Positions 10,175-35,899 of a stretch of DNA of 64,000 nucleotides are shown here, piece by piece. The position numbers and the translations under genes are program-made. The DNA comes from Macrostomum lignano. Lineage: Eukaryota. The stretch's first letter is position 1. The number at the start of each line of letters is the position of its first letter. The DNA lies in contig NIVC01001828.1 of assembly GCA_002269645.1 (NCBI GenBank), forward strand, positions 37,397 to 101,396. The letters are read 5' to 3'. The notes under the pieces were generated by a model. It made no database searches, had not been told where the DNA came from, and worked only from the letters and a program-made list of their open reading frames with translations.

Positions 10175-10207
<33 letters not shown>

Positions 10208-13200
10208 CTGCTGTAGCCCCTGTTGCTGGCCATGGTGCCAGTAGCTGACGCTGAGGCCGGCGCTCGGACAACCTCAACAGTGTGCGGCTGCTGCAGTTCG
10301 ATTGCTATTGGCTGCGGCTGCTGCTGCTGTGCTCCACCGCTAGCTGAATGATCCGCCTGCCGACTGAGGCTGTGGGTCTCGTACCGTCGGGTCGTCTGCT
10401 GTTGATGCTGCTGCTGCTGCTGAGGGCTTTGAACGGCAGCTGCTGGCAGTGGCAGAGACGTCGGCGATTGAATTGTCGGATCGCCAAAGTCAGGCGGTAC
10501 AGAGGACGAGTGAATGATTCTGCCGCCGCCACCGCCGGCTCCAGACATGTGAGTGAACTGTTGCTGCTGGACACCCACCTGGTGAATCTGCTGTCCCCTA
10601 GTGAGCGAATGCTGCTGATACTGCTGCGGCTGCAGGTGCACTTGGGCTGTTGTTGCCACAGCAACGCCGCCTGCCGATTGCGGCTGCGGAGTTGATGACC
10701 GCAGCGTAGCAACTGAAAATTTTCGACAGATAGAGAGACATCGTCAGCGGGGGAGCACAGCAGCTCTGTAGTTTGCGCATCTGATTAGCTCGTATCGCGA
10801 CAAACTACTCAGGTTCGATTCCGTGAGTGGCACATTAATTTGGTGCTTCAACATCCCAAGGCACAGAGAGTGTACATGCCTGACGATGTCAGGGTGCCTG
10901 CGTACGCATCCGTGTTGGTGTTCATGCTCAGGGATGAGGGGAATGGGTGTGAGTACATGAGCCACCTCGCTGGCTGGGCGTCCACCAACTGCTGCGAACT
11001 AGCTAAACTTGAAAAGCATCGTCTTTTGCTAAATCCAAAATTAAATTAATTGTTGACTCACTCCGTCGCTGGCTAATATTCATCGCCTGCTGTTGCTTCG
11101 CAGTCTGCAATCCGCCTCCGACGACAGTCGCAGTTGGTAGATGCGGCGTCGATTGAGCCATGAGACGCCTGCCGCCGGCTGGGGTGGCTTCTTTTGGAGC
11201 CTCCAGATCGTGGATGCCCTTGCCGATGGGCTGCAGGGTGATGGTCTCCACCTCCTGGTAGACTTCGCCAGGCGTGTGCGTCACCGTGCGCTGCTGCAGG
11301 GTCTGTCAGATTTTTTATTAATCAATTAAAACTTTTTTTCGTTAAATGTTAATTATACTACTTTTCCTTGTTAATCAGCATCTTCAGCGTTTGATTAAAA
11401 TAACTCGGTAAAATTCCATTATTGGTTTTTAACTACTGGACTGTTGACTTAGAAAATTAACTTCAATCCTTCAGTGTTTGCTTGATGTGAAAGCAGACAG
11501 GGACAAAAGGTACTTTGCCCCTTCTTATTAGAGACAGGGGTGGCTGTGTGCACCCTAGCGCACTTTAAGCGTCATTGCCCACAACCGGCGAGAGGCACAC
11601 ACTCACACAGGAGTGTACAGGAGCCCTAACTTTATTTTTCTTTAGGCATGTACACTTCTCTGTGCCTTGGAGGTTGGCCCTTGAGGGTGTTAATTGCACG
11701 AGCAGAGCCAAGCTGAGATTCCTATTTAGCCCCAAATTAATTTGACTGCACTTGGAATCGAGCCTGGGCCGCCGACACGTGAGAGCGCCGCGCTAGACCA
11801 CTGGGCTACGGCACCCCAACCTTGCCCCCTAGTAAATCAAAAAGTACTTTCTTTTAGGGACTGGCTTTCTTCATTCGTGGTAGCTTCAGTAAATTTCAAG
11901 CGAGAGAAACTATCAATATTTTCTCATGCCTTCATGTAGACCAACTACCAGATATACAAGATATGCGCACAGTTCGCCCTTCTGTTTCAGTAGCATGAAT
12001 TTCTTGAGCTTTAGTGGCTCGGACGCCAACTGCGCAGCCATGAGAAACCAAGAAGTTTGCATCGCATGCCGGGCATTCCACTGCCCAATTATTCAAAGTC
12101 AAATCCTGTTTATGGATGAAAAGTTCCTTCAGTAGCTGCTGCCACATAGGGGGAGATTAATGTCTGCTTTGGATGACTGAACTGCCCTCCGAAATAATGC
12201 GCAGTTTTGGCCACTTGCACACAAAACACGGCGGGCAATATCAGGCTGTGGAGGCTTGTACAGTACACTCACTAGCTAAAGGGTTCTCGTTTTTGATACT
12301 CGCAAAAAACACCGAAATATTGACATCTTGGATATAAGCACGACACGGCAGCATCGGAACTTAAAACAAAATGAAAAAAAATATTCGTCTCTAATAACGC
12401 GCATACTCTTAACTTACTACTTGTAGCGGATCAGTTCCCGCGTTTGACGAGTGCACTGGAATCTGCAGCTGAACGGGCCAGGGAAATCGGATGTTGAGTG
12501 GTAGGTTTTTCTTCTTTGGTGTTCAGGTTCACTATTTAACATTTGCGACCCTCTCCTGGCTATAGACTATCGCTCCACATGTAGCCATTGGCAGTACAGT
12601 CAGTTGCAGCAGAAGCTATAGTCTATGGTCTTAACCCCGGGGTCGGCTGAAGTGGCACGCCTAGGGAGGGGTATATGGAATCTGTGGGAAGGGTCTGTAG
12701 AACTGTGGCCTGTCTCACCCATAGACTACAGACATATTATCTAAGGCTTAGTCATAAGACCTTTCACTTGCAGCCTCACCCGTCGTTCCTGCTGATGCCG
12801 CGAATGCGTGGTGGCTTCGCCAGCCGTTCGGTGCACCAGCGGCGTCTCGCTGGTGCGAAAGTGGCTCACGGAACTGGCCCGATGGCTGGCGCCAGTCATC
12901 TTGATCTTCTGCCGGACCCGCTCCAGCGACCTCTCCAGTTCCTGCAGCTTGCTATCGAAGGTGTCCTCACCGCCTGCCTCCTGGCCAGAGGATTCAAAGT
13001 GCCTCCGGCTCTCTAAGTGCTGCTGCTGATGATGATGCTGCTGCTGCCTGCCTGCATGCGGCTGGAGAGTGCTGCTGGCCAGGTTGGATCTGCCTGCTGT
13101 GCGGCAGCGTTGATAGTAAGCTCAGAATGAATTCGTTATCACAGTTTAGTAAGACAATAAAGATATTCTAAACTATTGTACTTGGAACACAAAGAAGATG

Positions 13201-16078
13201 CCCAGTTTATTCAGATAATAAAGAGCTTCTAAACTACTTGGAACACAAAGAAGATGTCCAGTTTATTCAGATAATAAAGAGCTTCTAAACTACTTGGAAC
13301 ACAAAGAAGATGTCCAGTTTATTGAGATAATAAAGAGCTTCTAAACTACTTGGAACACAAAGAAGATGTCCAGTTTATTGAGATAATAAAGAGCTTCTAA
13401 ACTACTTGGAACACAAAGAAGATGTCCAGTTTATTGAGATAATAAAGAGCTACTAAACTACTTGGAACACAAAGAAGATGTCCAGTTTATTGAGCCATTA
13501 AGTATCTCCCAAGCTATTGAAACACCAGAGGCCCAGTCAGAATGTATTGACTAAAATGATCCTGTAGTTATTTAAAGGGAGATGACTATGATTTCTTGTA
13601 TATTTATTAATAGACTAATATAAACAGAGGATGGAGTGGCGACACAGAACCCCAATTAGCTGCACCGCGCAGAATTATTAATGCCCCAATTTGGGGAACA
13701 GCTACAATCTCCCTGTTCATCAACATTCCAAATTTGGACACAAGCACTGTTTTCCTTCTGGTCAGCGGTGCTGGGAAAAAAGCAGACTTGCCTCCAAACG
13801 GGCCGCCCCCGTCGCGGTACTGCTGCTCGCTTGACTGCCTGGCGAAGGTGTGGCGCTGCCTCTCCCAGTTCGGCTGCTGATGCTGCTGGTGCTGCAGGCT
13901 GAAATGCTGTCCCCCTGTCTCGCGACTCTCACTCTGGTGCCTGAAGCGGCCTGCAAGCGGGAAAGCGGAGCGGGACCGGCTTTGGCGCCTCATTTCAGGC
14001 AAGAATGCAACATATAGGCAAGGTTAGGCTATCTGCTTGCTCTTCGCTCTGAGGCTTTGGCGAACAAATTTCTACTAGCTAAATGCGGCCTCGGCCCGGT
14101 CCCTGCTCAGGATAGGGTCGTCCGCAATAGGGGCGGTTTGGGAGGGCCCACTTCCGCTGCAGGCAATCGAATTTGGGCTAAACGGGCGCACATGAGTGTA
14201 ATATGCAATTCATGCAAGTTTTGGGGGTAAACCCATCCACCCCCAAAAAATCGTTCCTTACCTCCAAGGCTTTGAAAGGCGTCCTCGAACGGCGCGGAAA
14301 CGCCACCGTAGTTTTGCTGCGGCTGCTGGTATGACTTGGCGAAGTAGCTCTGCTGCTGATGCTGCTGATGCTGCTGATGCTGCGGAAGCTGCTGGCGTTC
14401 GTTAAAATCGAACCGGCGCTCCTCGTCCAGGTCGTAGCCGCAGTCGCTCGCCGCTTTTCGCAGCTTCTTCAGCTTCTTCTGCGTTCGCCGAAGCTCCATC
14501 GCCAGCTGCCGCTCCCGTTCGGTCTCGAAGCTGTCGCCGCGCCCGCCCCCGCCAGCGCCGCCACCGCTGCTGCTCTGGTAGCGATAGGCGCCACCAGCTG
14601 TCGATGACGACGAAGAGAAGAGATGCTGCTGCTGTTGCTGGCGCTGGTGCTGGAATGGCTGCTGCTGCTGCTGAAACAGAAGATTGTGATGCTGGTGAAC
14701 TGGCTGATGCGGCTGATGGTGCACCGGCAGCTGGTAGGCGACATTGCGCGCCTGTTCCGCAGGCTCTGTTGAACGATGCCGGAGCCTCTCGCCGGCTGGC
14801 CTTGCAGAACCTGCGGCGCTGCCGCCTTTGCCACCGCCGCTGCTGCCGCTGCCAATGCCTAGCAGCTCATCCAGCAAGTTGTCGATATCCTGGACGGGCC
14901 GGTTCCGGCTGGTACCGTATCGCGACGATGAAGCCGAGTACTCGAACTCCGGCTGCTGCGAGTGCGACTGCAGCGGTGGCCCGAGTCCGGCTCCGCCGCC
15001 AAGGCTGCGATGGGCGTTTCCTGAGCCGATATTTGCTGCGAGTGGAGAGTTATTGAGGAGGCACTTCGGTGAGTTGCTTCAGAGCTTATCTGGTAAGTTT
15101 TTAATACTTCTATACGTACTAGGATGGAATTTTCATACTAGCTCGTAAATAGCTTTTACATTCAAATCAAATTTGTCCTGAAGCTACTCGCAGCAAATTA
15201 ACTCACTCCTAAAAACGGTGCAGAAGCGATTATTCTGCTGAAAATCGCGCGAATTTGCGCCGTAGTTCATTGCGCCGAAAGTTCCTCTCGATTCTGGGTC
15301 GGTTAGAAGCTGTCAGTCCAAGAGACGCGAACGGTCGTCTTTAATACGGATACGGAACCCACAATGGCTCAGTCTGTGGCTCTGTTTGTCTAAGCTTTCT
15401 CGCTTTCTCGTAGCGCAGTCCAAGGGAGCGAAATGGAGAAAAAATCAAGAGAGGCAGGATTTTGGCAGGAGCAAGAGACCGGATTAGGATGGACCCGCAT
15501 GGATTAGGTGAGGGCTGCGAAATGCCGACTGGGAGACCCGGAGGTGAAAGAGGCGGGCAGGCGAGAGGGAAGGAGAGGCGGTGCTTGGATGTCAACCAGC
15601 GCGGAGGAGAGGCTGAGGTGGGCGATGGAGAGGGGCGCGCACGATGCGTTCAATCGTTGCGGCCCAACGAATAAGCGGAGTAGCAGAAGGCCGAGCTGGA
15701 ATCGCTGGCTTAGGAAGATATTTCGTTCGGGCAGAGGTACAGGCAGAAGGAGCTTTCGGGGAAACGGTAGCTGGAGAGCCAGGTCTGTATGCCGGATGCT
15801 GCGAGGGAAAAGTGATCGATAATTTGTAGCCCAAAAAGGTTTGCGCCAGAAGTCAATGAAGGCTTCACCCCCGACCAAATATTCGTGTTCGATGTACGTG
15901 CATGTACACTAGCGGCTGCTGCTGCTGCTGCTGCTGCTGCTGCACTCTGCGCCGCCAACTGCAGCTGCCACCTCTGCGATTAGAGAGGCTGGCTATCCTA
16001 GCAACTGCTGGGATGCTGCGATACCAGAGATGCTGCTTCAAGAAGTTGTCTAGTCGACCTTGCTGTCTCTCTCTCTCG

Positions 16079-16113
<35 letters not shown>

Positions 16114-19100
16114 GCTCGATTTTTTCCAAGGCAACGCTGCTTTGCCACGGAACCGCCTATTCCCTTACTGGTGGTTGGGTTTAAGTGTCACGCCAGACCA
16201 CAGCCAGCGCTAGCAATAGAATTTGGTACTGCGAATGCACACGGGGAGCAGAGAAGAAGACGGAGGAGACCGGGAGAAGAGCTATTTTTGGATTCGATCC
16301 AACTTATAGCAGCAGGCTATATAAAACGCTCTAAACAAACCCGCACAACAAATTTCTTCCACCGATTGCGTCCAAGTAACCGTGGACTGTTGTAGAGAGG
16401 AAAAGCAAAAGACACTGCCCTAGCTAAAGGAGGGGGGGCAGAAGCAGAAACGCAGTCGAGCTGATTCAGTATGAATTATGAAAATTGGCAGCCGTTTGCT
16501 GGTGTTTTGTCTGGCACGCTTTCCTTGCTCGAGCAGCTTATTTGCCTAAACCTGCTTCCCAACCTTGCCCACCGTGTGCGGCAGTGCGCGCTTCAGCCCA
16601 GCAGATGATGCCACCACTAGTGCATTCTTGTTCCCAAATGATGGGTTGCGTAAGCGCCTTGCTTTCCCCTTCTTTCACTTATAAATATATCCTCAAATCT
16701 GGGCCCGCCCGAATAATTTCAGCCCAGTTTCAAAAACTGATTTTTACAATCGCCTGCCGTAGTAAAGCCCAGAACAGGGGGGGGGGGGGTCACAGGATCC
16801 GTGGCAGTAGCTGCCCAGCTCGCTGCTCGACATTTTTCAGGTAAACTGGGGCCGGGGGGGGGAAAGGTTCGTTCAAGCGCAGAAGCCAGATGTGCTGCAG
16901 TTCCGGCTTGATTCTTTTGCAGTCCTTTTCAGGCAGCCCAACCCGTGGATGGCGGGGGGAGCGCTGTGGAGCTGGAGGTCGGATACGTCTGACGCCGTTT
17001 CCCTGTCTCCACCAGCCTCCGCTTCAAGTTCTTCCTCATCAGCGTCTTATCAACGGGGCCTGCTGCAACAGCCAAGCCAAGCTTTTTTTGGGCAAAAGGC
17101 GAAGACCAAAAAGGGGTAAAGCGATGCAAACTGTTGGCGGGCAGGGCCTGCTGACTGGACCAAGCCGGAGTCAGAAAGTCTGCCCAGCAGTCAGGCTGCT
17201 TCCGCACCACTGCCAGCTGGAAGCCCCTGCAGCATTGGCGCTCGGCTTTGGCCCCGACATGGAGAAGAATATTCGGGAGGGGGGGGCTGGAATCCGAGTG
17301 CAAATGGGGCGGACTGGAATTGATCCAAGCTTTTTCCCTCGATCCCCCATCTAGTCCAAATCCCATGGCCTGTCCAGAGCCCAACGATTCATAGAGGATA
17401 GTGAAATGGCTCGGCAAAGGCGGGAAGTGAAAGCTAGACATACAGAAGAATACAAATGCTATAGAAGTGGCTGGGGAACTTGTTGGCCTCTCATGTGATT
17501 GACAATATTTATGCAAATTGATGACTGGTTGGATGTAAATTTTATTCACAATAATGTTCGCCTTAAGAGATTAGGAAAGTATTGGGCACATTGTTTTTTT
17601 CATGTAGCTAGTGTTACTAGATATATTATTAGTGCCTGCACTCTGGTGTTTTCAAGAAAGAAAAGTAACAAACTTTCACGTTCCGTCCAAATTCTTCATA
17701 TGGTTCAGCATTCAACTATTCGACTGCGATGCTTGTGGTCTTACGTATCTTGATGAGTATTGAGAAGCGGCAGTTCGGCTAGTTTCCGGTTTTTCGAGAT
17801 CACATTCAAAATGGATATTGGATGCCTGCGAACGCTCCGTTCTAATGGCGGTGAACTGAGCCTTTTTTGTTTTTATTTTATTAGAGGCAAAGAGCTCTTC
17901 CTGACCCACTTTAAGCGACATCGTCACACAACCGGCGAGACCCATTTCACCGACTCCTCTGAGCAGGTACACAAGCGCGCGGATATGTACGCAGTCATAC
18001 GCACAGACACACACTCCAGTGTACAGCGGCCCTAACTTTATTTATCGTTATTAGGCATGTACACTTCACTGTGCCTTGGGGGTTGGCCCTCAATGGCGTT
18101 AACTGCACGAGCAGAGCAAAGCCGAGATTCCAATTTATCCCCAAATTAGCACTTGGAATTAGCACTTGGAATTAGCACTTGGAATTAGCACTTGGAATTA
18201 GCACTTGGAATTAGCACTTGGGCCGCTGGCACATGAGAGCGCCGCGCTAGGCTATGGCCCGTGAACTGACTCTGAACTACGAGTATCTGATATATACTCA
18301 GCAACAGTCAAAAGTTCCACCCTCCAAGCGAGATGAAAATTTTCTCACTTATTGCGACAACTTCTCACTCATCACAAGTCAACCCTCAAGTTACGCAACT
18401 ATAAGCAGCCGCGAGGAAAGGAAATTTGATCGAATCTAACGTCAGTCGCACAAAATCATAAGTTTTTATGCAATATAAGCAGTTAGAATTGCGATGCTTA
18501 ATAACGCGTGTGGGATCCCCTCGCACGCAGAAGTGCGGCGACTCTGCGGGGCATTCTCAGGATGAGGCGGTGCAGAAAGTCCTGGGGAAGCTGCTGCCAA
18601 GCGTTTTCAATGGCATGACGCAGCTCCGCAACATTCTGTGGTGGATTCTCTTTTCGAATGCTGCGTTTTAGAAAGTCCCACGAGACATGCTCGATGGGAT
18701 TCATGTCTGGGGACCGGGAAGGCCAGCGCAGAGTGCTCAGCTGTAGCTGTTCTTTTCGTTGACTAACAGCATCGGCTCGGTGTGGTGGCGCGTTATTGTT
18801 ATCCTGGTCAACTCAAGTAGCAATAAGACTCGCGCGTGCCGTAAGTTGCGTCACTCGAAAAGTGAGGAAATTCATCTCGCTTAGAGGGTGGAACTTTTGA
18901 ATGTTGCTGAGGATATACACTCATCAACATTGAAAACCGCCACTCTAGAGCATTGGCAGAGCAATTGACTTCAACTCACACTGCAATGACGCAAGATTTT
19001 ACAACCTCTCGCTCAGGCGCACTAGATCTAGGGTGGCGAAGCGACCATATACAATTCCTTGACTGGATACTGTCGGGCTAAGCGCATCACGACTGTACAA

Positions 19101-19457: not shown

Positions 19458-20283
19458 CTGAGGCTGGCACTCCTAGGACGGTTTTTCGTTTCTTATGTTC
19501 TAAACGTTCTTAATTCCCTCAGGCCGAAAGATTGGGTTTGAGTCGGATTTGTCTTTGTAAATTTGAATAACGAAAGCCGCGTTTATAGTCAACCGGGGCC
19601 GCGCGGTTTCACACATGTCAGCTAAGGCGCTCATGAACTGTTGTTGGGTTTCCCCGCCCTCTCCCTGCAGCTTGCTAGGGCCTCCGCTACTCCAGCCAAC
19701 CAGCCCGGGGGTTCCCGAGATTCCCACGCCTGCGGGCGGGGTGGGTGGCTGCGTTGAGAACAGGCAGAGAGGGGGCGGCGGCCTTGGTAGTTGACGGCGC
19801 TCATGGCCCCGACGCTGTCTCTCTGGGCAATGCCTATCCATGGTTCTGCTTCCCCCTCTCTCGCCCATTCTCTCTCTCTCTCTATCCCGTTTTGCATCGG
19901 CTGTTGTGTTGAAGAGAGAACAAGGCAGAAGGCCAGCTAACAAGCAGCTCAATATGGAAAGGCATTGGGTGAAGCTTCCACAGACACACACGCACGCGCA
20001 CACACAAATTAGACTAATGCGGAGTTTGCTGTTGTTTGCGTACTTAGTGCCCAACAGGGCGCGATACGCGCGGGGAGGGGAGAGAGAGAAAAAAAATGAG
20101 AGGAAGGAGAAGACCGAAGTTGGTGCTGGGCAAATGCGATGAGCGGCACGATTTCCGAGCGAATTCATGCTGAGAGCGCGCAACGAGTGAGAACTATAGT
20201 TGCCGGTTGCCATAGCCCCTTGTCAACCGCTGCGCAGCAGGCTGCGAGCTATTAATTTGATTGCGCGATGGCAGCGCAGGGAG

Positions 20284-20290: not shown

Positions 20291-20477
20291 ATACGCCCAG
20301 AGTACGCGGGCTAGTTGCAGTTACGACGGCTTCGGGTTACCGCGGCTTCCGCTGTGTGCTCATTTTTTGCCTTTCCAATTGCTGGTGTTGCACGACACAG
20401 CTCTGCCAGAGAAAGTTATTGCCGCGCTCATTCGACCCTTTTGGAAATGAATTAATAAATAGAATGTCGGAGTCTAG

Positions 20478-23400
20478 TTCCCAGTGAGCTCCGCGAAACC
20501 CACAAACCCAAGGACACGCGCGAAGCGCGTGTCCTTGGGTTTGTGGGGTGAGCGGAGCGAACGCGCGAGGCACAAAGTGCCGAGCATGAGGAACAAACAG
20601 CCAGCCAATGCGCGAAGCGCATTGGGTGGTCTGGCTTGTGACGAATATAATAATATGAGACGTGTGCATCGAAAAAATGACAAGAAAAATCTCACAAAAA
20701 CTGCTGTAACTTCAAAACTACAAGTGCGAATTTCACAAGTGAGGTGTCATTTTAAAGAGAAGAATCTGATCTATTTAACGAGTATAGTTTTGTATGGATT
20801 CACTGCGGAGAAAAGGAACAGGCTTCAGTTGAAATGTTTGTCTTAAGATTATGTCTTTACAAAAGTGCATTTCCTCATGCACATTAAAACTCGAGCTAAA
20901 AATGTTCGAGGGTTATAGGTGCGCCTTACTAAGATGCATAACATTATTGGGTTGTTTTTTTCAATTGTATCAAAAAGTTGGCACTTTGGTTGCAAAAAAT
21001 GCAAAAATTGAAAATGTACTTTTACAGTTTTTTGCATTTTTTTCTATACTGCTAATAGTTAAGCATACATACTATGCACCAATTGATGCGCAATTCAAAG
21101 ATACACAAGTGTGGAAGTTTTCAATTCTTAAACATTTGAAATCAGAAAGTTATCGACGAAAGACTAAAAATCATGATCTCAAACTGATTTGAGGAAAAGT
21201 GCTCATTATAATTTTTGGAATATGGAAGAAACAATTCAACGCCGTCATCTAATTCCAAACTAACTGTACTTTAAGGTACTGCGATGATTTTTTTATTGAA
21301 AGAGCGAAACCTGTTTAAATATTTGAAAAAATGGAAAAAAAGTACCTTTTTTCATAGAAATACACTCTTTTGACTGCTTAATCCGATTTCCAACAACAAA
21401 ATAGTTGCTTTCCTGCTGGTGCAAACCGTTATTAGGGTGAATTTTCAAAATTGCATACTGTGCCAAAAGTAAACTGAAGCTTAATATTTATAAACATTAG
21501 AAACGGGACCACTAATGGGTATTTTACTTTGGTTACTTACTATGGACTAAACTGGCACTGGCAGAGACAGATTTGAGAGAAACTAATTGCTCCATTGTAT
21601 TTGTATTTGGCTCCAGCGTTACAAATTACAATAGCTATTTCGGGGTCTAACCGGCTAAGTTATCAAAAAAGCTAGATACCAATCACCAGTTTCATCATCA
21701 GCTATACCTACCACGATTTTATAGTCACATGCAACAGTAATACCCTCCTTTAAAAGTTTTCAATATCTAAAATGATGTGTTAAATTTTATAAAATTTCAT
21801 AAACAGTGAAATTTTAGCTGTTTACGTGCTGGTGGTTTGAACGTAGCTACTTTGTGCGAAAATACACTGTCATTAATACCGTACCTATTATTGTATTTAT
21901 TGTATTGAAAGTTGATGTGTAAATTGTACTTTTCTAGTTAATGAAGACAAAGTCTTCGCCCCAGTGAGCTTTGGGGTTGGAATTTTATAATACCTAGTGT
22001 TGTATCGATTATTTAAAGACTTTCAAGGCATTATTAACGCTGATGCTCCTAATATTTTGCGTCGTGTCATACATAAAGTTAGCCTAATAGATAAAGTAGG
22101 GCGAGAGTTGTAAAATGTCTCTAACGTCAAATGATTTATAGGAAGGGAATTAGGGATGTCGATTCCCCAGGGAATTATCTTATCGGGGACCCCGGTGAAA
22201 AGAAAAAATAAGTAAAAACGGCGGATCACTTAGATTGTAAGTGGAATTTTTTAAACTTTGATTTAAGCTTTGTACTACATGTTCAAGGCGCAGGGGTAAA
22301 AATTTTAAACAATGTTTTTTTAAACTGTATTTGACAATGTGGCATCACGAAATCGTGCGCGCACCTTTATCGGAAAAGTGCATTTGTTGGAATGCATGCT
22401 AAACAGCTACGCTCGTGAGAGGATAATTAATGAATGAGACTGTTTTTATAATCGGAATTTTATTTCTTGCATATATATGTAAATCACCATTTTGTCCTTG
22501 TCTAATAGGGAGTATATGTATGACACCCCCCTATGCGTCAGTGCCTGACGCATGACGCAGCGCTGCGCCTGCGTCAAGCCGTCAACGCAGACCAACACAG
22601 CAGTCACTAGTCAGTAAGGCTTCTTTTTCCTGACGGGTTTCTTTTCTACGTGCAATTTGCTTGATTGAATGACTTATTAGTGAAAAAACAATCAAACGTG
22701 TGTTGTGTTTCAAATACATGTAATGCATTGAAATAAGCAATTATGCGGTAAAAGAGCATAGACAGAGTTTCAATCAGCTTTCTGTGAATCAGTTTCTTAT
22801 TTTAATGGCAAAAATTAAGTTACAAATGCATTTTTTCATATTTTTTCTCCCCAGGGTCCCCGGTTAAATTCCCCGGAGAGTATTCCCCGACAAGCTCCCC
22901 GGGGAGCACTCCCGGGGTCAACATCCCTAGAAGGGAAACTACGAGCATAAGTTCTGCAACACATATACAAGTAGCTAAGCATTAATAGACGCACTGCACC
23001 GATAAAATGTAATGGAATTGCTCGAATCACCGACACCAAGACCCATAAAACTGGAGAAACTGGCAGGATATAGTAGATACATGTAGGTCAGAATCAGAAG
23101 TGATCATGGGTGGGTGGGTCAAGTGATCATGGGTTCGACCTCGATTGTATTATTCCTTCTTAATCTTATGCAATTAATTGTAAATTAGGTATGAAGTAAC
23201 AGTAATTATCCTTGACCATGCTAGAGTAAAGACAAGTCAAAGTCAAGTTAATAAAAATAGACACACAGTGTAACAATAACAATGGTTTTTAGAGCCATTT
23301 TTCTTGTCTGTGTTTGTCTTTGTACATACATGTACATTTGGGAAGACTTATCTGGACCCAATCCCTTCTTATTCTACATGTACGCTGTTTTGGGTATGGG

Positions 23401-26400
23401 GGTTAGAGTTGGGCCGTCTGACACCCCCCTCCCCCCCCCTACCATAGTGGACTGGAGAGAAAGAAGCACATGCTATCGCTATTGGCTAGCCTGTCGTTCT
23501 CTTTCTCTTTACCTTCTGTCTTGTGTAGCGTACACTATCCAATGCACAAGGCCCAACTTTCCACTAAAGGAAGGTTCATATAGTCCGCCCATGGGCTTCC
23601 TCTTGCTTTCGCGTACACTCAAGGCCACTCACTCTCAACACCAGCCACTAGAGGCTTGTTTTAAATAATCGATCGATAATATTAAATGTACACTTGAAAG
23701 CTTGCTTTGGATCCTAGCAGAAGGGGGAGAAAGTGGCCAAGGCCACCACACCCCACAAGGCAGGCAGGCCGGCCCGAGTGCGATAACGAATGACAAAAAA
23801 ATAGAAAAGTACAATTTACACATCAACTTTCAATACAATAAATACAATAATAGGTACGGTATTAATGACAGTGTATTTTCGCACAAAGTAGCTACGTTCA
23901 AACCACCAGCACGTAAACAGCTAAAATTTCACTGTTTATGAAATTTTATAAAATTTAACACATCATTTTAGATATTGAAAACTTTTAAAGGAGGGTATTA
24001 CTGTTGCATGTGACTATAAAATCGTGGTAGGTATAGCTGATGATGAAACTGGTGATTGGTATCTAGCTTTTTTGATAACTTAGCCGGTTAGACCCCGAAA
24101 TAGCTATTGTAATTTGTAACGCTGGAGCCAAATACAAATACAATGGAGCAATTAGTTTCTCTCAAATCTGTCTCTGCCAGTGCCAGTTTAGTCCATAGTA
24201 AGTAACCAAAGTAAAATACCCATTAGTGGTCCCGTTTCTAATGTTTATAAATATTAAGCTTCAGTTTACTTTTGGCACAGTATGCAATTTTGAAAATTCA
24301 CCCTAATAACGGTTTGCACCAGCAGGAAAGCAACTATTTTGTTGTTGGAAATCGGATTAAGCAGTCAAAAGAGTGTATTTCTATGAAAAAAGGTACTTTT
24401 TTTCCATTTTTTCAAATATTTAAACAGGTTTCGCTCTTTCAATAAAAAAATCATCGCAGTACCTTAAAGTACAGTTAGTTTGGAATTAGATGACGGCGTT
24501 GAATTGTTTCTTCCATATTCCAAAAATTATAATGAGCACTTTTCCTCAAATCAGTTTGAGATCATGATTTTTAGTCTTTCGTCGATAACTTTCTGATTTC
24601 AAATGTTTAAGAATTGAAAACTTCCACACTTGTGTATCTTTGAATTGCGCATCAATTGGTGCATAGTATGTATGCTTAACTATTAGCAGTATAGAAAAAA
24701 ATGCAAAAAACTGTAAAAGTACATTTTCAATTTTTGCATTTTTTGCAACCAAAGTGCCAACTTTTTGATACAATTGAAAAAAACAACCCAATAATGTTAT
24801 GCATCTTAGTAAGGCGCACCTATAACCCTCGAACATTTTTAGCTCGAGTTTTAATGTGCATGAGGAAATGCACTTTTGTAAAGACATAATCTTAAGACAA
24901 ACATTTCAACTGAAGCCTGTTCCTTTTCTCCGCAGTGAATCCATACAAAACTATACTCGTTAAATAGATCAGATTCTTCTCTTTAAAATGACACCTCACT
25001 TGTGAAATTCGCACTTGTAGTTTTGAAGTTACAGCAGTTTTTGTGAGATTTTTCTTGTCATTTTTTCGATGCACACGTCTCATATTATTATATTCGTCAC
25101 AAGCCAGACCACCCAATGCGCTTCGCGCATTGGCTGGCTGTTTGTTCCTCATGCTCGGCACTTTGTGCCTCGCGCGTTCGCTCCGCTCACCCCACAAACC
25201 CAGAAACCCAGAAGGTAATACCGTACCTATTATTGTATTTATTGTATTGAAAGTTGATGTGTAAATTGTACTTTTCTATTTTTTTGTCATTCGTTATCGC
25301 ACTCGGGCCGGCCTGCCTGCCTTGTGGGGTGTGGTGGCCTTGGCCACTTTCTCCCCCTTCTGCTAGGATCCAAAGCAAGCTTTCAAGTGTACATTTAATA
25401 TTATCGATCGATTATTTAAAACAAGCCTCTAGTGGCTGGTGTTGAGAGTGAGTGGCCTTGAGTGTACGCGAAAGCAAGAGGAAGCCCATGGGCGGACTAT
25501 ATGAACCTTCCTTTAGTGGAAAGTTGGGCCTTGTGCATTGGATAGTGTACGCTACACAAGACAGAAGGTAAAGAGAAAGAGAAAGACAGGCTAGCCAATA
25601 GCGATAGCATGTGCTTCTTTCTCTCCAGTCCACTATGGTAGGGGGGGGGAGGGGGGTGTCAGACGGCCCAACTCTAACCCCCATACCCAAAACAGCGTAC
25701 ATGTAGAATAAGAAGGGATTGGGTCCAGATAAGTCTTCCCAAATGTACATGTATGTACAAAGACAAACACAGACAAGAAAAATGGCTCTAAAAACCATTG
25801 TTATTGTTACACTGTGTGTCTATTTTTATTAACTTGACTTTGACTTGTCTTTACTCTAGCATGGTCAAGGATAATTACTGTTACTTCATACCTAATTTAC
25901 AATTAATTGCATAAGATTAAGAAGGAATAATACAATCGAGGTCGAACCCATGATCACTTGACCCACCCACCCATGATCACTTCTGATTCTGACCTACATG
26001 TATCTACTATATCCTGCCAGTTTCTCCAGTTTTATGGGTCTTGGTGTCGGTGATTCGAGCAATTCCATTACATTTTATCGGTGCAGTGCGTCTATTAATG
26101 CTTAGCTACTTGTATATGTGTTGCAGAACTTATGCTCGTAGTTTCCCTTCTAGGGATGTTGACCCCGGGAGTGCTCCCGGGGAGCTTGTCGGGGAATACT
26201 CTCCGGGGAATTTAACCGGGGACCCTGGGGAGAAAAAATATGAAAAAATGCATTTGTAACTTAATTTTTGCCATTAAAATAAGAAACTGATTCACAGAAA
26301 GCTGATTGAAACTCTGTCTATGCTCTTTTACCGCATAATTGCTTATTTCAATGCATTACATGTATTTGAAACACAACACACGTTTGATTGTTTTTTCACT

Positions 26401-27145
26401 AATAAGTCATTCAATCAAGCAAATTGCACGTAGAAAAGAAACCCGTCAGGAAAAAGAAGCCTTACTGACTAGTGACTGCTGTGTTGGTCTGCGTTGACGG
26501 CTTGACGCAGGCGCAGCGCTGCGTCATGCGTCAGGCACTGACGCATAGGGGGGTGTCATACATATACTCCCTATTAGACAAGGACAAAATGGTGATTTAC
26601 ATATATATGCAAGAAATAAAATTCCGATTATAAAAACAGTCTCATTCATTAATTATCCTCTCACGAGCGTAGCTGTTTAGCATGCATTCCAACAAATGCA
26701 CTTTTCCGATAAAGGTGCGCGCACGATTTCGTGATGCCACATTGTCAAATACAGTTTAAAAAAACATTGTTTAAAATTTTTACCCCTGCGCCTTGAACAT
26801 GTAGTACAAAGCTTAAATCAAAGTTTAAAAAATTCCACTTACAATCTAAGTGATCCGCCGTTTTTACTTATTTTTTCTTTTCACCGGGGTCCCCGATAAG
26901 ATAATTCCCTGGGGAATCGACATCCCTAATTCCCTTCCTATAAATCATTTGACGTTAGAGACATTTTACAACTCTCGCCCTACTTTATCTATTAGGCTAA
27001 CTTTATGTATGACACGACGCAAAATATTAGGAGCATCAGCGTTAATAATGCCTTGAAAGTCTTTAAATAATCGATACAACACTAGGTATTATAAAATTCC
27101 AACCCCAAAGCTCACTGGGGCGAAGACTTTGTCTTCATTAACTAG
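20478..27145 (+). mobile_element. Non-autonomous Helentron/Helitron2-like element (~3.3 kb; outer copy 20478-21936 + 25216-27145), interrupted by an inverted copy of itself
   Basis: 5' TT-cccagtgagct (20478-20490); 3' agctcactggg (27109-27119), then hairpin gaagac-ttt-gtcttc, then CTAG (27142-27145). No credible ORF. The superfamily assignment rests on terminal architecture only. Confidence 0.6.
21934..25202 (-). mobile_element. Inner, inverted, 5'-truncated copy of the same element
   Basis: 21934-23864 is the reverse complement of 25216-27145, and 23802-25202 is the reverse complement of ~20536-21936. The mirrored ORFs in the track are near-identical. Confidence 0.85.
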
Positions 27146-29131: not shown

Positions 29132-29674
29132 CTAGCAGAAGCCGCGATTAATAACTCTGGCGCCGAGGCAGGAGGCGATGCAAGAGTTCAGGTAGGTGTT
29201 GCGCGCGCTGCTACCGGAAGCGTAGGCGCACACGGGATCGTAGTTGCTGGGGCAGTTGCAGTTGCCGCCGGCATTGCGATTGTTATAGTTATTGTAGTTG
29301 TACCTGTACTGGTTGTAGTTGCGGTAGTTGCTCCGGTAGTTGCGGTAGTAGTTCCGGTAGTTGCGGTAGTAGTTCCGGTAGTTGTAAGGGTTCCGGTTGT
29401 TATAGATATTGTAGTTATAGCGACTGCGGCTCCAATAGTTTGGATAGCTGCCGCTTCTGGTGGCGCCGCTGGTTGTGCCGCAAAATCCGTAGGTAAAAGA
29501 GTTGTAGCCGTTGCACTGGGCGTAACAAGAATTTGCGTAGGTTTGGCCGTTGGCGCACACGGGCTGGTAGCCGGCGCTGGCGCACTGGCTGCAGGACACC
29601 TGGCCATTGGCGAGATGGCTGGCAGCGGCGGCTAGCAGGACCACAGCCAGAGAGAGTGCGGAGCTGGAGCGCAT
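29132..29674 (-). CDS. Secreted protein with two Kazal-type domains and a Tyr/Arg/Asn-rich linker (180 aa, single exon)
   Basis: ATG at 29674; signal-peptide-like MRSSSALSLAVVLLAAAASHLANG; Kazal-like CSQCASAGYQPVCANGQTYANSCYAQC...FC and CNCPSNYDPVC...TYLNSCIASC...FC; TAG at 29134-29132. Confidence 0.85.
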   Translation of the reverse strand: MRSSSALSLAVVLLAAAASHLANGQVSCSQCASAGYQPVCANGQTYANSCYAQCNGYNSFTYGFCGTTSGATRSGSYPNYWSRSRYNYNIYNNRNPYNYRNYYRNYRNYYRNYRSNYRNYNQYRYNYNNYNNRNAGGNCNCPSNYDPVCAYASGSSARNTYLNSCIASCLGARVINRGFC

Positions 29675-30549
29675 CTTCAAATCAGCAATTAACTACCGGG
29701 CAGACTACCTGCGAAATTACCTGTCCTGTGGCGATAACCTTATGGGCTGATTAACTGAGCTGATTAAATACATCTGCATGGGTGGGGTGGGTGGCGCCGG
29801 TTCTGCCTGCGCGCAACGTGCCAATAATTGATTGGCTGGCTGATCTTAAAGTTAGTCGGTTGGTTTACATCATTGTACAGTGCCATTGTTACTCTCACTA
29901 CCCCCTCACTCTTATCTAATCTCATTCTCTGCCCCCCTTTTCTGACTAAACGAGAGCTTAGCCTGTGTTATGCGTAGTACGAGTATCAAAGATAAACGTT
30001 AATTGCCACTTTGCAATCGATGAAAACTTGTTTAAATCGGTTTTTACCAAATATAACAAAGATCACACCAAAGATAACAATATAGGACAGCGTGCACAAA
30101 CAGCCTGACTGGATGATTAATTATTGCTTGCTTAACTTTAAAAGTACACCAGGTAACATTGAGCTACTATCTAGCCAAACTACGAGCGTAGCTTATTCTC
30201 CAGTGTAGCGCACCTTCTCAGCTTGGCATTTCTTTAATAGGTCTTAAAGTTAGAAGTTGTTATTATTGAATTGAAAATTAGGCTTAAATTTGGCATAATA
30301 TTTTCAGCACGCTGTTTATACCCAAAACGTTTAATTATAATTACGAGATAAAGAAGAATTTCGTCCTACAGGTCTGCCGATGACAAGTGAATGTCGAATA
30401 CTCGTTAGCAGTTATCTATAATATTGTATCATTGCTTTGTTTTAAAGTTCCTTGTGTAATAGAATATGTAAGATATTGCCAGTTAGTGCTCTGGTGCATG
30501 TACACTGTCACTACCACTGAGTAGGATCATTTGTAATTGCCGGTAATGA

Positions 30550-31650
30550 GTCATTGTCAGCTATAGTCAGGGTGTCATTGGTCATCTATGTCAGGGGTGT
30601 CATTGGTCATCTATAGTCAGTGTTAGCATTGGTCAGCTATAGTCAGGGGTGTCATTGGTCATCTATGTCAGTGTTGGCATTGGTCAGCTATAGTCAGGGG
30701 TGTCATTGCTCATCTATGTCAGGGGTTTCATTGGTCATCTATAGTCAGGGGTGTCATTGGTCATCTATAGTCAGGGGTGTCATTGGTCATCTATAGTCAG
30801 GGGTGTCATTGGTCAGCTATAGTCAGGGGTTTCATTGGTCAGCTATGTCAGTGGTTTCATTGGTCATCTATGTCAGGGGTTTCATTGGTCATCTATAGTC
30901 AGGGTGTAATTGGTCATCTATAGTCAGTGTTGGCATTGGTCAGCTATAGTCAGGAGTGTCATTGGTCATCTATGTCAGGGGTGTCATTGGTCAGCTATAG
31001 TCAGGGTGTCATTGGTCAGCTATAGTCAGGGGTGTCATTGGTCATCTATAGTCAGGGGTGTCATTGGTCATCTATAGTCAGGGGTGTCATTGGTCATCTA
31101 TAGTCAGGGGTGTCATTGGTCATCTATAGTCAGGGGTGTCATTGGTCATCTATAGTCAAGGGTGTCATTGGTCATTTATAGTCAGGGGTGTCATTGTTCA
31201 TCTATAGTCAGTGTTGGCATTGGTCAGCTATAGTCAGGGGTGTCATTGGCCATCTATAGTCAGGGGTGTCATTGGTCATCTATGCTAGGGGTGTCATTGG
31301 TCATCTATAGTCAGGGGTGTCATTGGTCATCTATGCCAGGGGTGTCATTGGTCATCTATAGTCAAGGGTGTCATTGGTCATTTATAGTCAGGGGTGTCAT
31401 TGTTCATCTATAGTCAGTGTTGGCATTGGTCATCTATGCTAGGGGTGTCATTGGTCATCTATAGTCAGGGGTGTCATTGGTCATCTATGCCAGGGGTGTC
31501 ATTGGTCATCTATAATCAGTGTTGGCATTGGTCAGCTATGGTCAGTGTTGGCATTGGTCATCTATAGTCAGGGGTGTCATTGGTCATCTATGTCAGGAGT
31601 GTCATTGGTCGGTCATTTATAGTCAGGGGTGTCATTGGTCAGCTATATTA
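30550..31650. repeat. 26-bp minisatellite (ggtcatctatagtcaggggtgtcatt), ~40 copies
   Basis: Period 26 (tatagtcagg at 31021 and 31047). Confidence 0.95.
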
Positions 31651-32512: not shown

Positions 32513-33139
32513 GATTGTGAAAATTATGCTGTTGGTTGCAAGCCGCATCAGCAAGATTGGATCGGAGCATTTCCGATTTTTTTAACACTATAAACTCGCC
32601 ATTTTAAGCGGCTCCTAAAAGAACTTCAGATTAGCAATGCCATCTGGCAAAACTTTTAACATAGACATTTAAGCACTCAAAACCGACTATTGAGTGCTTA
32701 AATGTCTCAATTAATCACCGCTTTCTACGGTGAGAACAAAAACTAAAATAACGGAAAACTGACATGCTGCTGGCTTGAAAAAACTACTTATCAGACTTGT
32801 TCAGTAGTGCCTGACGGATCTTACGAAGTCAGACTTTCTGAAACCATATTTTCTTGTCCTGTGCTAGTCCGCTTAGCGAATTCAGAGGACACAGCGCGGG
32901 AAAAAAATTCCTGTCATGCCATGTTCCGATCGAATGAACTGCACGATGAATCCCAGCTTGCGAGGGCATGATAATACCATTGGGAATCGTCTAAACATGC
33001 ACATGGAAGAGACACTCGCACAAATCCATATTGCCTTGGTTTGCTCTGAGGCGTGCCTTTGAGCAGACCAGCTTTAGTACCCCCGGGGGGTTGGTTTTGG
33101 GCTCTCGCTAAATTTTTTTGGTCGAATTTTTGCTGAATC

Positions 33140-34195
33140 ATGTCTGACTCTGTTAAAGTTCTACGTGAGAGGCTACAAGGTCTAGGCTTGCCAACGCATG
33201 GCAATAAAGGTGAACTGATAGAACGCCTATCTCAGCATTGTCAAACACTGGCCTCTGAACTGCAAAGCGAAGAAGCGGAGGCATCAGATCAGTACGAGAG
33301 CGGCGCGAGATCAACGGCAGAAAAAGGAAACGAGGCGGCCGAGCTTCAGAGCGACGCGGGGGCAGCGGCGGCAACTGGAGGCCTAGGGTCTGGCGCGGCT
33401 GGCGGCCTGGAGGACCAACTGCGGGAAGCGGAGCAGCGGATCCGCCTGCTGAAGCTGCGAAAAGAGGAGGCTCTGCTCCAGGCGGAGGTCAGCCAGCTCC
33501 AGCAACAGCCGGCCACCTCAGATCTCCCTGGTGAGTTCTTCGATGCCTTTATGTCGGAGGAGGCGCATACGAGGAAGCAGGAGATAGGGCTTAGAAAAGG
33601 CAGTCCCTACCGCATCCCTGAGTTTATCAGTAAGCGTAAGCAGCAGGACGCTGGTGTCACGCAGTCCGTGGACAGGTCGGGGAAGGTGGTCTTCAAGGTG
33701 AAGGAGGCTGCAGTGGAGACGTTGACGATGGGAGACTGGATAGCTGGCAATGCGCGCATCATGTTGAGAATGCTAGATGATGGCAGACTGGTGAAGCGAG
33801 GGGATGGTGGCTGCCCGGATGTGTCGGAGCTTCGCGACTACCTGCGCTACACTGTCCGCATCGGTGAGCTGTTCGACCTCGGGTTCGAGAAGGCGCGGGT
33901 GCTGAGATTTGACGATGAGTGCCGGCTTGGCGACTCGCCTGGTGCTACTTGGGAGGCGCGTGGTTCAGACATCGGCCTGGTGGCCACATATTTGATGGCG
34001 CCACAGAAGGGCGAGGTCGCTGCGGAGAGACCGGGTAGGCGGAGCCAGGGCATCTGTTTCGATTTCAACAAGGAGGCTGGGTGCAGCAGAAGGAACTGCC
34101 GGTTTGCTCATCGGTGCCGACGATGCGGTCAAGGCCATTCGGAAGCGGCCGTGCACGGGGGCCCGGGTGCGGAAGCAGGAGGCCCTCGACACTGA
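33140..34195 (+). CDS. Retrotransposon ORF1 (gag-like): N-terminal SAP domain, coiled coil, C-terminal CCCH zinc finger
   Basis: VKVLRERLQGLGLPTHGNKGELIERL fits the SAP pattern; ICFDFNKEAGCSRRNCRFAHRCRRCGQGH. Confidence 0.85.
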   Translation: MSDSVKVLRERLQGLGLPTHGNKGELIERLSQHCQTLASELQSEEAEASDQYESGARSTAEKGNEAAELQSDAGAAAATGGLGSGAAGGLEDQLREAEQRIRLLKLRKEEALLQAEVSQLQQQPATSDLPGEFFDAFMSEEAHTRKQEIGLRKGSPYRIPEFISKRKQQDAGVTQSVDRSGKVVFKVKEAAVETLTMGDWIAGNARIMLRMLDDGRLVKRGDGGCPDVSELRDYLRYTVRIGELFDLGFEKARVLRFDDECRLGDSPGATWEARGSDIGLVATYLMAPQKGEVAAERPGRRSQGICFDFNKEAGCSRRNCRFAHRCRRCGQGHSEAAVHGGPGAEAGGPRH

Positions 34196-34240
34196 CTGAA
34201 CGGCGGTGAAGTTTTTAATTCCCGGATTTTATCTACCGAT

Positions 34241-35899
34241 ATGAACCTGACGGAGTGGATGGAGGAGCTGAATGTTGTTGATGTGCCGCAGGATCGTAAG
34301 AGTTTCATTCTGGATGGAATCGCCAATGGGTTTCGTATCACTAACGTTCCGGCCAGGAGCATCGAAAGGATCGAAGTTAGCAACTACAACTCTATCAATG
34401 TTCTTATGGAAGCGGTGGAGAAGCAGATCGGCAGAGAGGTTGAGCTGGGCCGTTACCGCCTGTGTCCAAAGGGGCAGCGGCCTGAGATTGTGAGTGCTAT
34501 CGGTGCCCTGCCGAAAGACAACGAACGGGTGCGCCTGATTCACGACTGTAGCCGGCCGGCCAGTGGCTGCGTCAACTCGATGTGGGTCGGTCAGGAGAAG
34601 CTGCGCTTTTCTTGCGCGGAAAACTTTGCCAGGAAGTTGACTAGAGGATGCTGGATGACCAAAGTCGACTTGAGCGAGGCTTATCGTGCGGTTGGTGTGC
34701 ACCCTGACGACTTCAGCCGAACTGGAATCAAGTTTCGCTTTCGGGACTCCAACGCTGCATCCTACATTTACGACACTAGGCTACCCTTTGGGGCGGCAGC
34801 TTCGGTGACGTGCTTTCATCGGCTCAGCGAGGCAATGAAGCTGATGATGGTGCGGAGAGGTTTCATCAAGACTGAGGCGTACTTGGATGACTTTGCATTT
34901 TGTGGTTCGCGAGAGGACTGTCAGAATTTTTTTGACCAGATGACTGACCTCGTGACTCGCTTGGGCTTTACTGTCAACTGGGGCAAGTGTCAGCGGCCCT
35001 CTCAGCGTATGTCCTTCTTGGGTGTCGAGTTTGACACTCTCACTGGGGTGAAGAAACTGTCGGATGAGAAGGTGGAGAAGCTTGTCTGTCTGCTGGAGCT
35101 GGAAGCGGGAAAAACCAGAATTAGTCGGCGGTCATTGCAGCATGTGATTGGTAAGCTCGGTTGGGCGGCGCAGGTTATCTGTTCTGGGCGCACATTCATG
35201 CGGGAGTTGATCGAGTGTTGCAATGCTCTTCGGCCAGGGCAGCGGATGAAAATCGATGAGCGGCTGCGGAGCCTTTTTCAGTGGTGGACTGTTTCGTTGA
35301 AGTCGTGTTGGTGGTCGAAGTTGTGGCCTATGTACGTGAAGGATGTTGCCATCGAGTCGGATGCTTGCGGAAGAGGCGGTGCGGCGGTGCTGCGAATGCC
35401 CAATGGTTGCTGGGACTGGTGCTATGTGGACTGGTTGATGGATGCGGACTCGGCGTTTGTAGAGCTGCCCATCAATTACAAGGAAGCGGTGGCACCGCTG
35501 CTGGGCGTCATCCGCTGGAGGGAGCAGCTGAAGGGCTCCAGGATCAGCATCTATTGCGACAACCAAGCCGCCTGCCACATTATCAACAAGGGCGTGTCAA
35601 AGTGTGCGCCACTTCAGCGGCTGCTGCAGACGGTGGCGCTCATGTGCCTGCGCTATGGGATGAGTGTTCGTGCTTTCCACGTGTCAGGCGAGTTCCAGAT
35701 TTTTGCGGATGCGGCTTCTCGGTTGCATGAGCCTAGCCAGTTGTTAAATTTTTTACTCCGCTGTCATGGTTCTGTGTGCCAGTGGACGCTGGAGACCCTG
35801 CACATGCATGCTTTCTGCCCCGCCACCGCCGCCTCCCTTCATTTACAGGCCGCCAAGCTGCGTCGGACCCTCTTAGCCGCCGCGCCGCCTCGCTGCTGA
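34241..35899 (+). CDS. Retrotransposon reverse transcriptase-RNase H (DIRS type)
   Basis: DLSEAYRAV, RLPFG, YLDD, FLGV (RT); SDACG, INYKE, CDNQA, ADAASR (DIRS-type RNase H). Confidence 0.93.
   Translation: MNLTEWMEELNVVDVPQDRKSFILDGIANGFRITNVPARSIERIEVSNYNSINVLMEAVEKQIGREVELGRYRLCPKGQRPEIVSAIGALPKDNERVRLIHDCSRPASGCVNSMWVGQEKLRFSCAENFARKLTRGCWMTKVDLSEAYRAVGVHPDDFSRTGIKFRFRDSNAASYIYDTRLPFGAAASVTCFHRLSEAMKLMMVRRGFIKTEAYLDDFAFCGSREDCQNFFDQMTDLVTRLGFTVNWGKCQRPSQRMSFLGVEFDTLTGVKKLSDEKVEKLVCLLELEAGKTRISRRSLQHVIGKLGWAAQVICSGRTFMRELIECCNALRPGQRMKIDERLRSLFQWWTVSLKSCWWSKLWPMYVKDVAIESDACGRGGAAVLRMPNGCWDWCYVDWLMDADSAFVELPINYKEAVAPLLGVIRWREQLKGSRISIYCDNQAACHIINKGVSKCAPLQRLLQTVALMCLRYGMSVRAFHVSGEFQIFADAASRLHEPSQLLNFLLRCHGSVCQWTLETLHMHAFCPATAASLHLQAAKLRRTLLAAAPPRC

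Follow-up and report, generated by a model that had tools for sequence, protein, structure and literature searches.

In the 64,000-nt stretch of contig NIVC01001828.1 analysed here (in the following called the window), positions 20474-27145 are occupied by a non-coding element of 3.3 kb that is interrupted by a nearly identical copy of itself in inverted orientation. The segment 20536-21936 is the reverse complement of 23802-25202 over 1401 nt with 100% identity, and 21934-23864 is the reverse complement of 25216-27145 over 1931 nt with 99.9% identity (one mismatch and one gap). Both pairs were returned by a repeat finder and by self-BLAST of the region 19.5-28.5 kb, in mutual agreement. On the plus strand the arms follow each other in the order A-B-A'-B', so that the two pairs cross. 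A first-pass annotation made from the sequence alone had described such crossed arms, an element nested inverted within itself, and a small number of differences in the form of a substitution and homopolymer indels. The repeat finder and self-BLAST bear out the arrangement with its coordinates, and the alignment of the arms bears out the nesting.

To compare the two copies, the outer one was reconstructed by joining 20536-21936 to 25279-27145 (3268 nt), and the inner one was taken as the reverse complement of 21934-25202 (3269 nt). Their global alignment shows two differences (99.94% identity), namely one substitution, A versus C (25584 versus 23496), and one C3/C4 indel in a homopolymer (26175 versus 22904), close to what the first pass had noticed. 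A match of the arms by chance is ruled out at 3.3 kb and 99.94% identity. No further copy of the 3.3-kb unit, even a diverged one, was found in the 64-kb window. An imperfect palindrome of 50 nt (84%) lies within the element and is present in both copies, at 20994-21042 and 24696-24744. The features of the locus are collected in Table 1; the architecture, the joints and the terminal features are direct observations on the assembled sequence.

Table 1 Features of the self-nested element, from left to right, followed by the minisatellite arrays of the window.
Feature	Position	Strand	Remarks
Left terminal block CTAGTT, outer element	20474-20479	+	inverse of AACTAG at 27140-27145; flanking base 20473 is T
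5' subterminal inverted repeat CCCAGTGAGCT	20480-20490	+	11 bp, exact; 2 nt after TT (20478-79)
5' hairpin, overlapping the 5' subterminal inverted repeat	20488-20558	.	71-nt palindrome, 87% complementary
Outer copy, left part (A of the first-pass annotation)	20536-21936	+	100% reverse complement of 23802-25202
63-bp target segment, copy 1 of 3	21874-21936	+	identical to 25216-25278, reverse complement of 23802-23864
Junction 1, CTA microhomology (3 nt)	21934-21936	.	common to the interrupted outer sequence and the inverted 3' terminus CTAGTTAATG...
Inner copy, inverted	21934-25202	-	exact 3' terminus present; first 62 nt at the 5' end missing
63-bp segment, middle copy, within the inner element	23802-23864	-	inverted
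Junction 2, 13-nt filler GAAACCCAGAAGG	25203-25215	+	within the 8-nt-period stutter of the adjoining CCCA(C/G)AAA motif
63-bp segment, copy 3, target duplication beyond the inner copy	25216-25278	+	identical to 21874-21936
Outer copy, right part (bulk of B' of the first-pass annotation)	25279-27145	+	repeat finder, self-BLAST, global alignment
3' subterminal inverted repeat AGCTCACTGGG	27109-27119	+	26 nt upstream of the terminus; followed by GC, then the stem-loop
3' stem-loop GAAGAC-TTT-GTCTTC	27122-27136	+	6-bp stem, 9 nt from the terminus
3' terminal ATTAACTAG	27137-27145	+	flank continues with TTCTCTTC (TTCTC)
Minisatellite arrays, first six	2329-2698, 7803-8154, 13142-13494, 30550-31647, 39655-41129, 42113-43686		
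Minisatellite arrays, other five	45286-46097, 46763-47485, 48656-49600, 59811-60601, 61307-61727		

Without the insert the element measures 3330 bp. Its left end reaches beyond the duplicated block: the terminal CTAGTT (20474-20479) lies 56-62 nt to the left of it and is directly followed by the 11-mer CCCAGTGAGCT. The left end as a whole is the inverse of the right end minus a 20-nt stem-loop module, that is, the two ends form an asymmetric inverted repeat. Within the window the 11-mer is confined to 20480, 21960 (in the inner copy) and, on the minus strand, 27109. When 4500 real 150-nt background segments of sequence were compared with the right end, six shared an 11-mer with it, and none (0/4500) showed the two-block pattern, in which a match of 8 nt or more adjoins the terminal 6-mer without a gap. 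Because the 11-mer is restricted to these sites in the window and background sequence rarely matches, the inverted-repeat match between the ends is not a chance match. It is brought out by this anchored two-block test against real background, whereas plain gapped local alignment of the ends misses it and scores no higher than shuffles.

The two ends differ in their secondary structure. The 5' hairpin has a perfect stem of 23 bp (20499-20521 paired with 20525-20547) and a predicted stability of -42.4 kcal/mol as DNA (z = -11), which none of 200 shuffled sequences reached. The left breakpoint of the duplicated block, at 20536, falls within the 3' arm of this hairpin. The 3' stem-loop is weak (-4.6 kcal/mol) and no different from shuffles. 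In the inner copy, read on the minus strand, the 3' stem-loop lies at 21943-21957 and the 3' subterminal inverted repeat (subTIR) at 21960-21970. The flanks of the outer element read ...GGAGT/CTAG...CTAG/TTCTCTTC (here and below a slash between bases marks a boundary), with a T on both sides and no visible target duplication. A paralogous empty site was not found in the window.

The unit is devoid of coding content. It contains no open reading frame (ORF) longer than 128 amino acids, and six-frame Pfam searches with stops masked gave no match, including no remnant of a reverse transcriptase or transposase. Two small ORFs of the unit had no record in a protein look-up. Rfam families and tRNAs were likewise absent from the unit at gathering score, with only weak generic hairpin matches at the 5' palindrome.

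The joints of the inner copy can be read at nucleotide resolution, as the uninterrupted inner copy shows the point at which the outer copy was opened, ...GTACTTTTCTA/TTTTTTTGTC..., within T-rich sequence (...TTTTCTA/TTTTTTT). At the left joint the outer ...TTTTCTA passes into GTTAATGAAGAC..., which is the inverted 3' end CTAGTTAATG... of the element. The inner copy thus starts at the ...AACTAG end to within a 3-nt ambiguity (CTA, 21934-21936), and the first-pass statement that it starts at the element's own CTAG 3' terminus holds within these 3 nt. This CTAG marks more than a boundary of homology, being at the same time the outermost part of the asymmetric terminal inverted repeat, and the partner of the right end in that repeat, 20474-20490, falls outside the duplicated block.

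The other end of the inner copy is incomplete. It stops at 25202, inside the 5' hairpin, and lacks the first 62 nt of the element including the 5' terminus and the 5' subTIR. The filler that follows is part of a stutter, since Tandem Repeats Finder reports an 8-nt period (CCCAGAAA, 2.9 copies) at 25191-25213 that takes it in. After the filler the outer copy restarts 63 nt before the point at which it was left, and the inner copy is therefore bracketed by a 63-bp direct repeat (21874-21936 and 25216-25278). This 63-bp segment is present in three copies, the middle one inverted, and the rest of the duplicated unit in two (2-3-2). The flanks of the inner element, read on its own strand, are not T/T.

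In its ends the outer element resembles the HINEs, or DINE-1-like elements; within the Helitron2 group of rolling-circle transposons, these accompany the Helentrons as non-autonomous partners (Thomas, Vadnagara & Pritham 2014, PMC4067079; Chellapan et al. 2016, PMC5148889). According to these studies, HINEs and Helitron2 elements carry subTIRs of 12-15 bp, of which the left one is set back from the 5' terminus by 2-4 nt; the 3' inverted repeat lies 20-60 nt and a palindrome of 5-10 bp lies 8-35 nt from the 3' terminus. Nested in the 5' subTIR is a hairpin or inverted repeat, so that hairpins are present at both termini (PMC4067079; PMC5148889), and insertion, into TT or T-rich sequence, leaves the target unchanged (PMC4067079). 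Such elements would further be expected to form a dispersed multi-copy family with common termini, shared by an autonomous partner that encodes Rep/helicase with or without an endonuclease. In the element described here, the short subTIR is represented by CCCAGTGAGCT with its inverse at 27109-27119, one base under the published length range. The 3' repeat at 26 nt and the 6-bp palindrome at 9 nt from the terminus are within the published ranges, and the 5' hairpin (20488-20558) begins inside the subTIR as in the definition. The element is also non-coding, flanked by T on both sides, and no target duplication is seen. It differs in being long for a HINE, in having no central tandem array, and in ending with CTAG, a motif usual for canonical Helitrons. 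Taken together, 20474-27145 fits a HINE-like, non-autonomous Helitron2/Helentron (DINE-1-like) element, a putative assignment to transposons that draws on the structure of the ends.

The CTAG end named in the first-pass annotation implies a canonical Helitron. Part of this stands: the end ...GAAGACTTTGTCTTCATTAACTAG has the form of a 3' CTRR with an upstream hairpin (9 nt upstream here, about 11 nt expected). Likewise, Helitron1/Helraiser ends in CTAG on the 3' side, preceded about 10 nt upstream by a hairpin, and the outer element shares with it the lack of a target duplication; 5'-truncated copies and abutting copies are known for canonical Helitrons (Grabundzija et al. 2016, PMC4778049). 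The remainder does not stand. The left end, T/CTAGTTCCC or TT/CCCAG, shows no 5' TC, both flanks are T instead of an A/T target, and terminal inverted repeats as well as a 5' hairpin are present. We therefore rejected a canonical Helitron (Helitron1); the Helitron2/Helentron layout fits instead.

The window also contains a DIRS-like retrotransposon at 33029-37722 (+), without sequence similarity to the element. Its ORFs encode a SAP-domain protein (33140-34195) and a reverse transcriptase/RNase H (34241-35899), and a third ORF (35776-36834) has a weak tyrosine-recombinase match (Phage_integrase, E = 0.004, below the Pfam cut-off). Its split direct repeats are 33029-33102, matching 37020-37093 (98.6%), and 36939-37022, matching 37328-37411 (100%). 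Because DIRS-like elements are a family with split repeats, kinship with the self-nested unit was considered; it was rejected for lack of sequence similarity and of coding content in the unit. A remnant of a DDE_3 (Tc1/mariner-type) transposase lies at 18501-18812 (-; E = 1e-7).

Turning to how the inner copy arose, let a and b be the parts of the outer element to the left and right of the opening point. The locus then reads a, the reverse complement of ab, filler, the tail of a, and b, which is the order expected as the product of two successive template switches. The footprint of such a process is present, with two inverted junctions in cis (21936/21937 and 25202-25216), the tripled 63 bp, the CTA microhomology and the 13-nt stutter. 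The same copy-number pattern is produced in structures with duplications around an inverted triplication (DUP-TRP/INV-DUP) by iterative template switching during replication-based repair (Grochowski et al. 2024, PMC11293582). There, too, a triple segment with an inverted centre is flanked by double segments, two inverted junctions lie in cis, and one joint carries microhomology and the other a short templated insertion. The present case differs in scale (kilobases rather than hundreds of kilobases), in that the first switch is not mediated by an inverted low-copy repeat already in place, and in that one breakpoint lies exactly on a transposon terminus.

This last point connects the event with the element. 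The first switch meets, within 3 nt, the last base of the element, which is defined independently by the outermost pair of the terminal repeat (20474 with 27145). Because the first switch lies at this terminus and the backward copy ends in the 3' arm of the 5' hairpin, the event is tied to the element itself. The first-pass annotation had offered two mechanisms, local self-insertion by the element and a terminus-primed template switch. The second fits the joints, while ordinary self-insertion is contradicted by the loss of 62 nt, the filler and the 63-bp duplication.

With about even confidence, we therefore favour a Helentron-type element carrying an inverted copy of itself made by two template switches, most likely on an element copy that stopped at its own terminus. 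A growing plus strand that had arrived at 21936 would have annealed, over the three nucleotides CTA/TAG, to the 3' end of an element copy of plus-strand sense. This template would have ended at its own 3' terminus, would have been folded at its 5' end, as expected of a strand nicked by Rep or excised, and would most simply be a nicked or excised rolling-circle intermediate, or else a sister copy nicked there. Backward synthesis on that strand would then have covered 3.27 kb, 27145 to 20536, before coming to a halt within the strong 5' hairpin. The 13-nt stutter would have followed, and the strand would have returned to its original template at 21874, 63 nt behind the point at which it had left. 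The order of these events, the role of a transposition intermediate and the existence of the structure in the animal rather than in the assembly only are inferences.

Several points weigh against this reading of the element and its rearrangement. The subTIR has 11 bp versus the published 12-15 bp, and the 3' repeat at 26 nt fits Helitron2 (20-40 nt from the end) but not the HINEs of mites (38-60 nt; PMC4067079; PMC5148889). An independent second copy of the element was not found in the 64-kb window, a 28-mer of the 3' end had no match in metagenome and viral contigs, and Pfam revealed no Rep or helicase domain in the tested ORFs of the window, hence no autonomous partner there. The left CTAG might belong to the flank. 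Moreover, CTAG contains TA and could hide the TA target duplication of a Tc1-like element. Tc1/mariner-type elements have a TA target duplication, terminal inverted repeats of at least 20 bp, and a DDE transposase or belong to a family derived from elements with one. In the present case the inverted repeat would comprise just 3 + 11 nt with a 20-nt interruption on one side. Finally, the part given to a transposition intermediate is suggested by the positions of the breakpoints only.

That part could be taken further. The locus may represent a fossil of failed rolling-circle transposition, in which a linear single-stranded copy, after Rep had cut it precisely at the 3' end and while its 5' hairpin was still folded, became the template for replication or repair of the donor. 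We regard this as possible, though rather doubtful. A comparable process is known from strand-displacement replicons such as adeno-associated virus, in which an inverted copy arises when the polymerase moves over to the complementary or displaced strand, giving snap-back or copy-back genomes. These are extrachromosomal, simple fold-backs, whereas here the inverted copy is chromosomal and is followed by a return to the original template. If the failed-transposition reading is true, the locus would be evidence, at the level of sequence, that Helitron2-type elements have a linear intermediate ending at the terminus, and also a one-step route to long hairpin-RNA (small-RNA) loci directed against the element's own family.

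The same footprint would be left by an ordinary switch of templates at a chromosomal replication fork (fork stalling and template switching/microhomology-mediated break-induced replication, FoSTeS/MMBIR-type) without any transposition intermediate. The nascent strand would jump to the opposite strand about 5 kb ahead, copy back to the hairpin and return, and the breakpoint would fall on the end of the element by accident or under the influence of the small stem-loop nearby. Inverted junctions in cis, a 3-nt microhomology, a 13-nt stutter and a tripled 63-bp segment are all expected from it (PMC11293582); the return point in a hairpin of -42 kcal/mol fits structure-induced stalling, and the event is local, as is usual for such switches. 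We nevertheless consider this explanation unlikely, as junction 1 lies at most 3 nt from the outermost base of the terminal repeat, a coincidence of about 1 in 1000 for a random point in the 3.3-kb unit, and the 3' stem-loop (-4.6 kcal/mol) is too weak to be a good stalling site.

Improbable to the same degree, in our judgement, is an artefact, that is, a chimera formed in vitro during whole-genome amplification or library preparation, or an error of assembly, with the animal itself having a single 3.3-kb copy. It would explain, and this also speaks against the template-switch reading in the animal, why the copies differ at just two positions, one of them a homopolymer length as is typical of long-read consensus errors. 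The distant DMXL matches described below would in addition be compatible with a small invertebrate from a poorly sampled group, and for such animals the DNA is often amplified. However, the common chimeras, arising from a missed adapter or a fold-back, give an a-b-b'-a' palindrome with one junction, and the locus has two junctions, a filler and a triplication. Random switching in vitro would not predict breakpoints at the terminus of an element and in its hairpin either, and the 64-kb window contains no other near-perfect inverted duplication. On the crossed arms, the two junctions and the filler we rejected a simple fold-back chimera of reads or assembly, which leaves room for more complex artefacts.

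It is very unlikely that the inner copy was made by target-primed reverse transcription of a local transcript by a long interspersed nuclear element (LINE), inserted antisense into its own source. The exact 3' end, the truncated 5' end, the filler at the 5' junction and the 63-bp target duplication would suit this route, as would a T-rich nick site on the plus strand, TTTT/C. It would leave unexplained that a poly(A) or any other tail of LINE type is missing from the unit, as is any remnant of a reverse transcriptase, and that its ends are those of a rolling-circle element and not of a retroelement; a chance landing within its own 3.3-kb source is itself very unlikely.

The least probable explanation, and hardly a tenable one, is canonical transposition of the element into itself by rolling-circle integration or by cut-and-paste with a TA target: rolling-circle elements do cluster and insert side by side (PMC4067079), and the target in the uninterrupted copy is T-rich (TTTTCTA/TTTTTTT), but the inner copy lacks the 5' terminus with its subTIR (62 nt) and shows a filler, a 63-bp duplication and flanks other than T/T, whereas Helitron transposition requires the 5' end (PMC4778049) and HINE insertion leaves the target unchanged (PMC4067079). 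Both forms of self-insertion were rejected on the joints, as the termini are not both intact and the target change is not that typical of these families (none, or a fixed 2-10 bp).

If the structure is real, the template-switch reading would combine at one locus a rolling-circle transposon and template switching of the replication type. Both the type of element and the type of rearrangement are already known; their joint occurrence is a neat instance, and neither element nor mechanism is of a novel kind. Lying exactly at the 3' terminus and within the 5' hairpin, the breakpoints would give a small but concrete clue to the physical state of the transposition intermediate in Helitron2/Helentron elements, a little-studied group. 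In genome annotation, a pattern of an element nested in itself calls for confirmation at the level of reads.

The arrangement would also have consequences for the locus. The crossing of the arms would let a transcript form either the full A-A' or the full B-B' pairing, but never both together. If transcribed, the locus would plausibly yield long double-stranded RNA, and possibly small RNAs, directed against the element's own family, as the first-pass annotation had proposed. The two pairs of matched, inverted arms (1.4 and 1.9 kb) would plausibly make a real structure fragile and invite inversion followed by deletion to one copy. Were A and A' to recombine, B would be turned round and the b segments would come to lie in direct orientation; a deletion between these would restore the single copy.

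Regarding the surrounding genes, the first-pass annotation had placed an exon of a tensin gene about 1 kb from the element. This was not confirmed, and the sole verified tensin exon, encoding an SH2 domain, lies about 9.7 kb away. This tensin-type exon (9208-10743, -) encodes a long disordered stretch followed by the SH2 domain (Pfam SH2; tensin-2 SH2 in PDB at 6e-28). A Pfam scan of the minus-strand ORFs at 10.7-20.5 kb and 27.1-29.1 kb gave no further tensin exons, and exons for the N-terminal phosphatase/C2 part of tensin were not located. The ORF nearest to the element, 19503-20222 (-), had no family match. On the right side, the nearest recognisable coding piece is an ORF at 29135-29692 (-), about 2 kb from the element's right end, with two weak, sub-threshold Kazal-type matches separated by a low-complexity linker rich in Tyr, Asn and Arg.

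Further downstream, exons of a DMXL/rabconnectin-type gene were identified between 45279 and 59682 (-). WD40 repeats are encoded at 45279-46958 and pieces of the Rav1p_C domain at 54468-56195, 56548-57042, 57881-58579 and 58606-59682. The best named matches come from a pseudoscorpion, insects and a tick, at just 36-55% identity, so that the protein collection searched contains no close relative of the host. Taken by themselves, these matches would suggest an animal, probably an arthropod.

Minisatellite arrays are unusually dense in the window (Table 1), with a spacing between copies of about 20-60 nt and 82-98% identity. The arrays at 46763-47485 and 59811-60601 belong to one 25-nt family in opposite orientations. 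In addition, a purine-rich minisatellite of 3.2 kb (51219-54385) with a unit of about 25-28 nt (GGAGAGAGGAGAGAGGCGGCAGGGA) is free of stop codons in several frames on both strands, which results in three spurious ORFs of more than 1000 amino acids. Finally, a short dispersed repeat of about 170-230 bp occurs in both orientations at 11590-11817, 18004-18172 and 57156-57377 with 83-87% identity, and may be a short interspersed nuclear element (SINE) or a miniature inverted-repeat transposable element (MITE).

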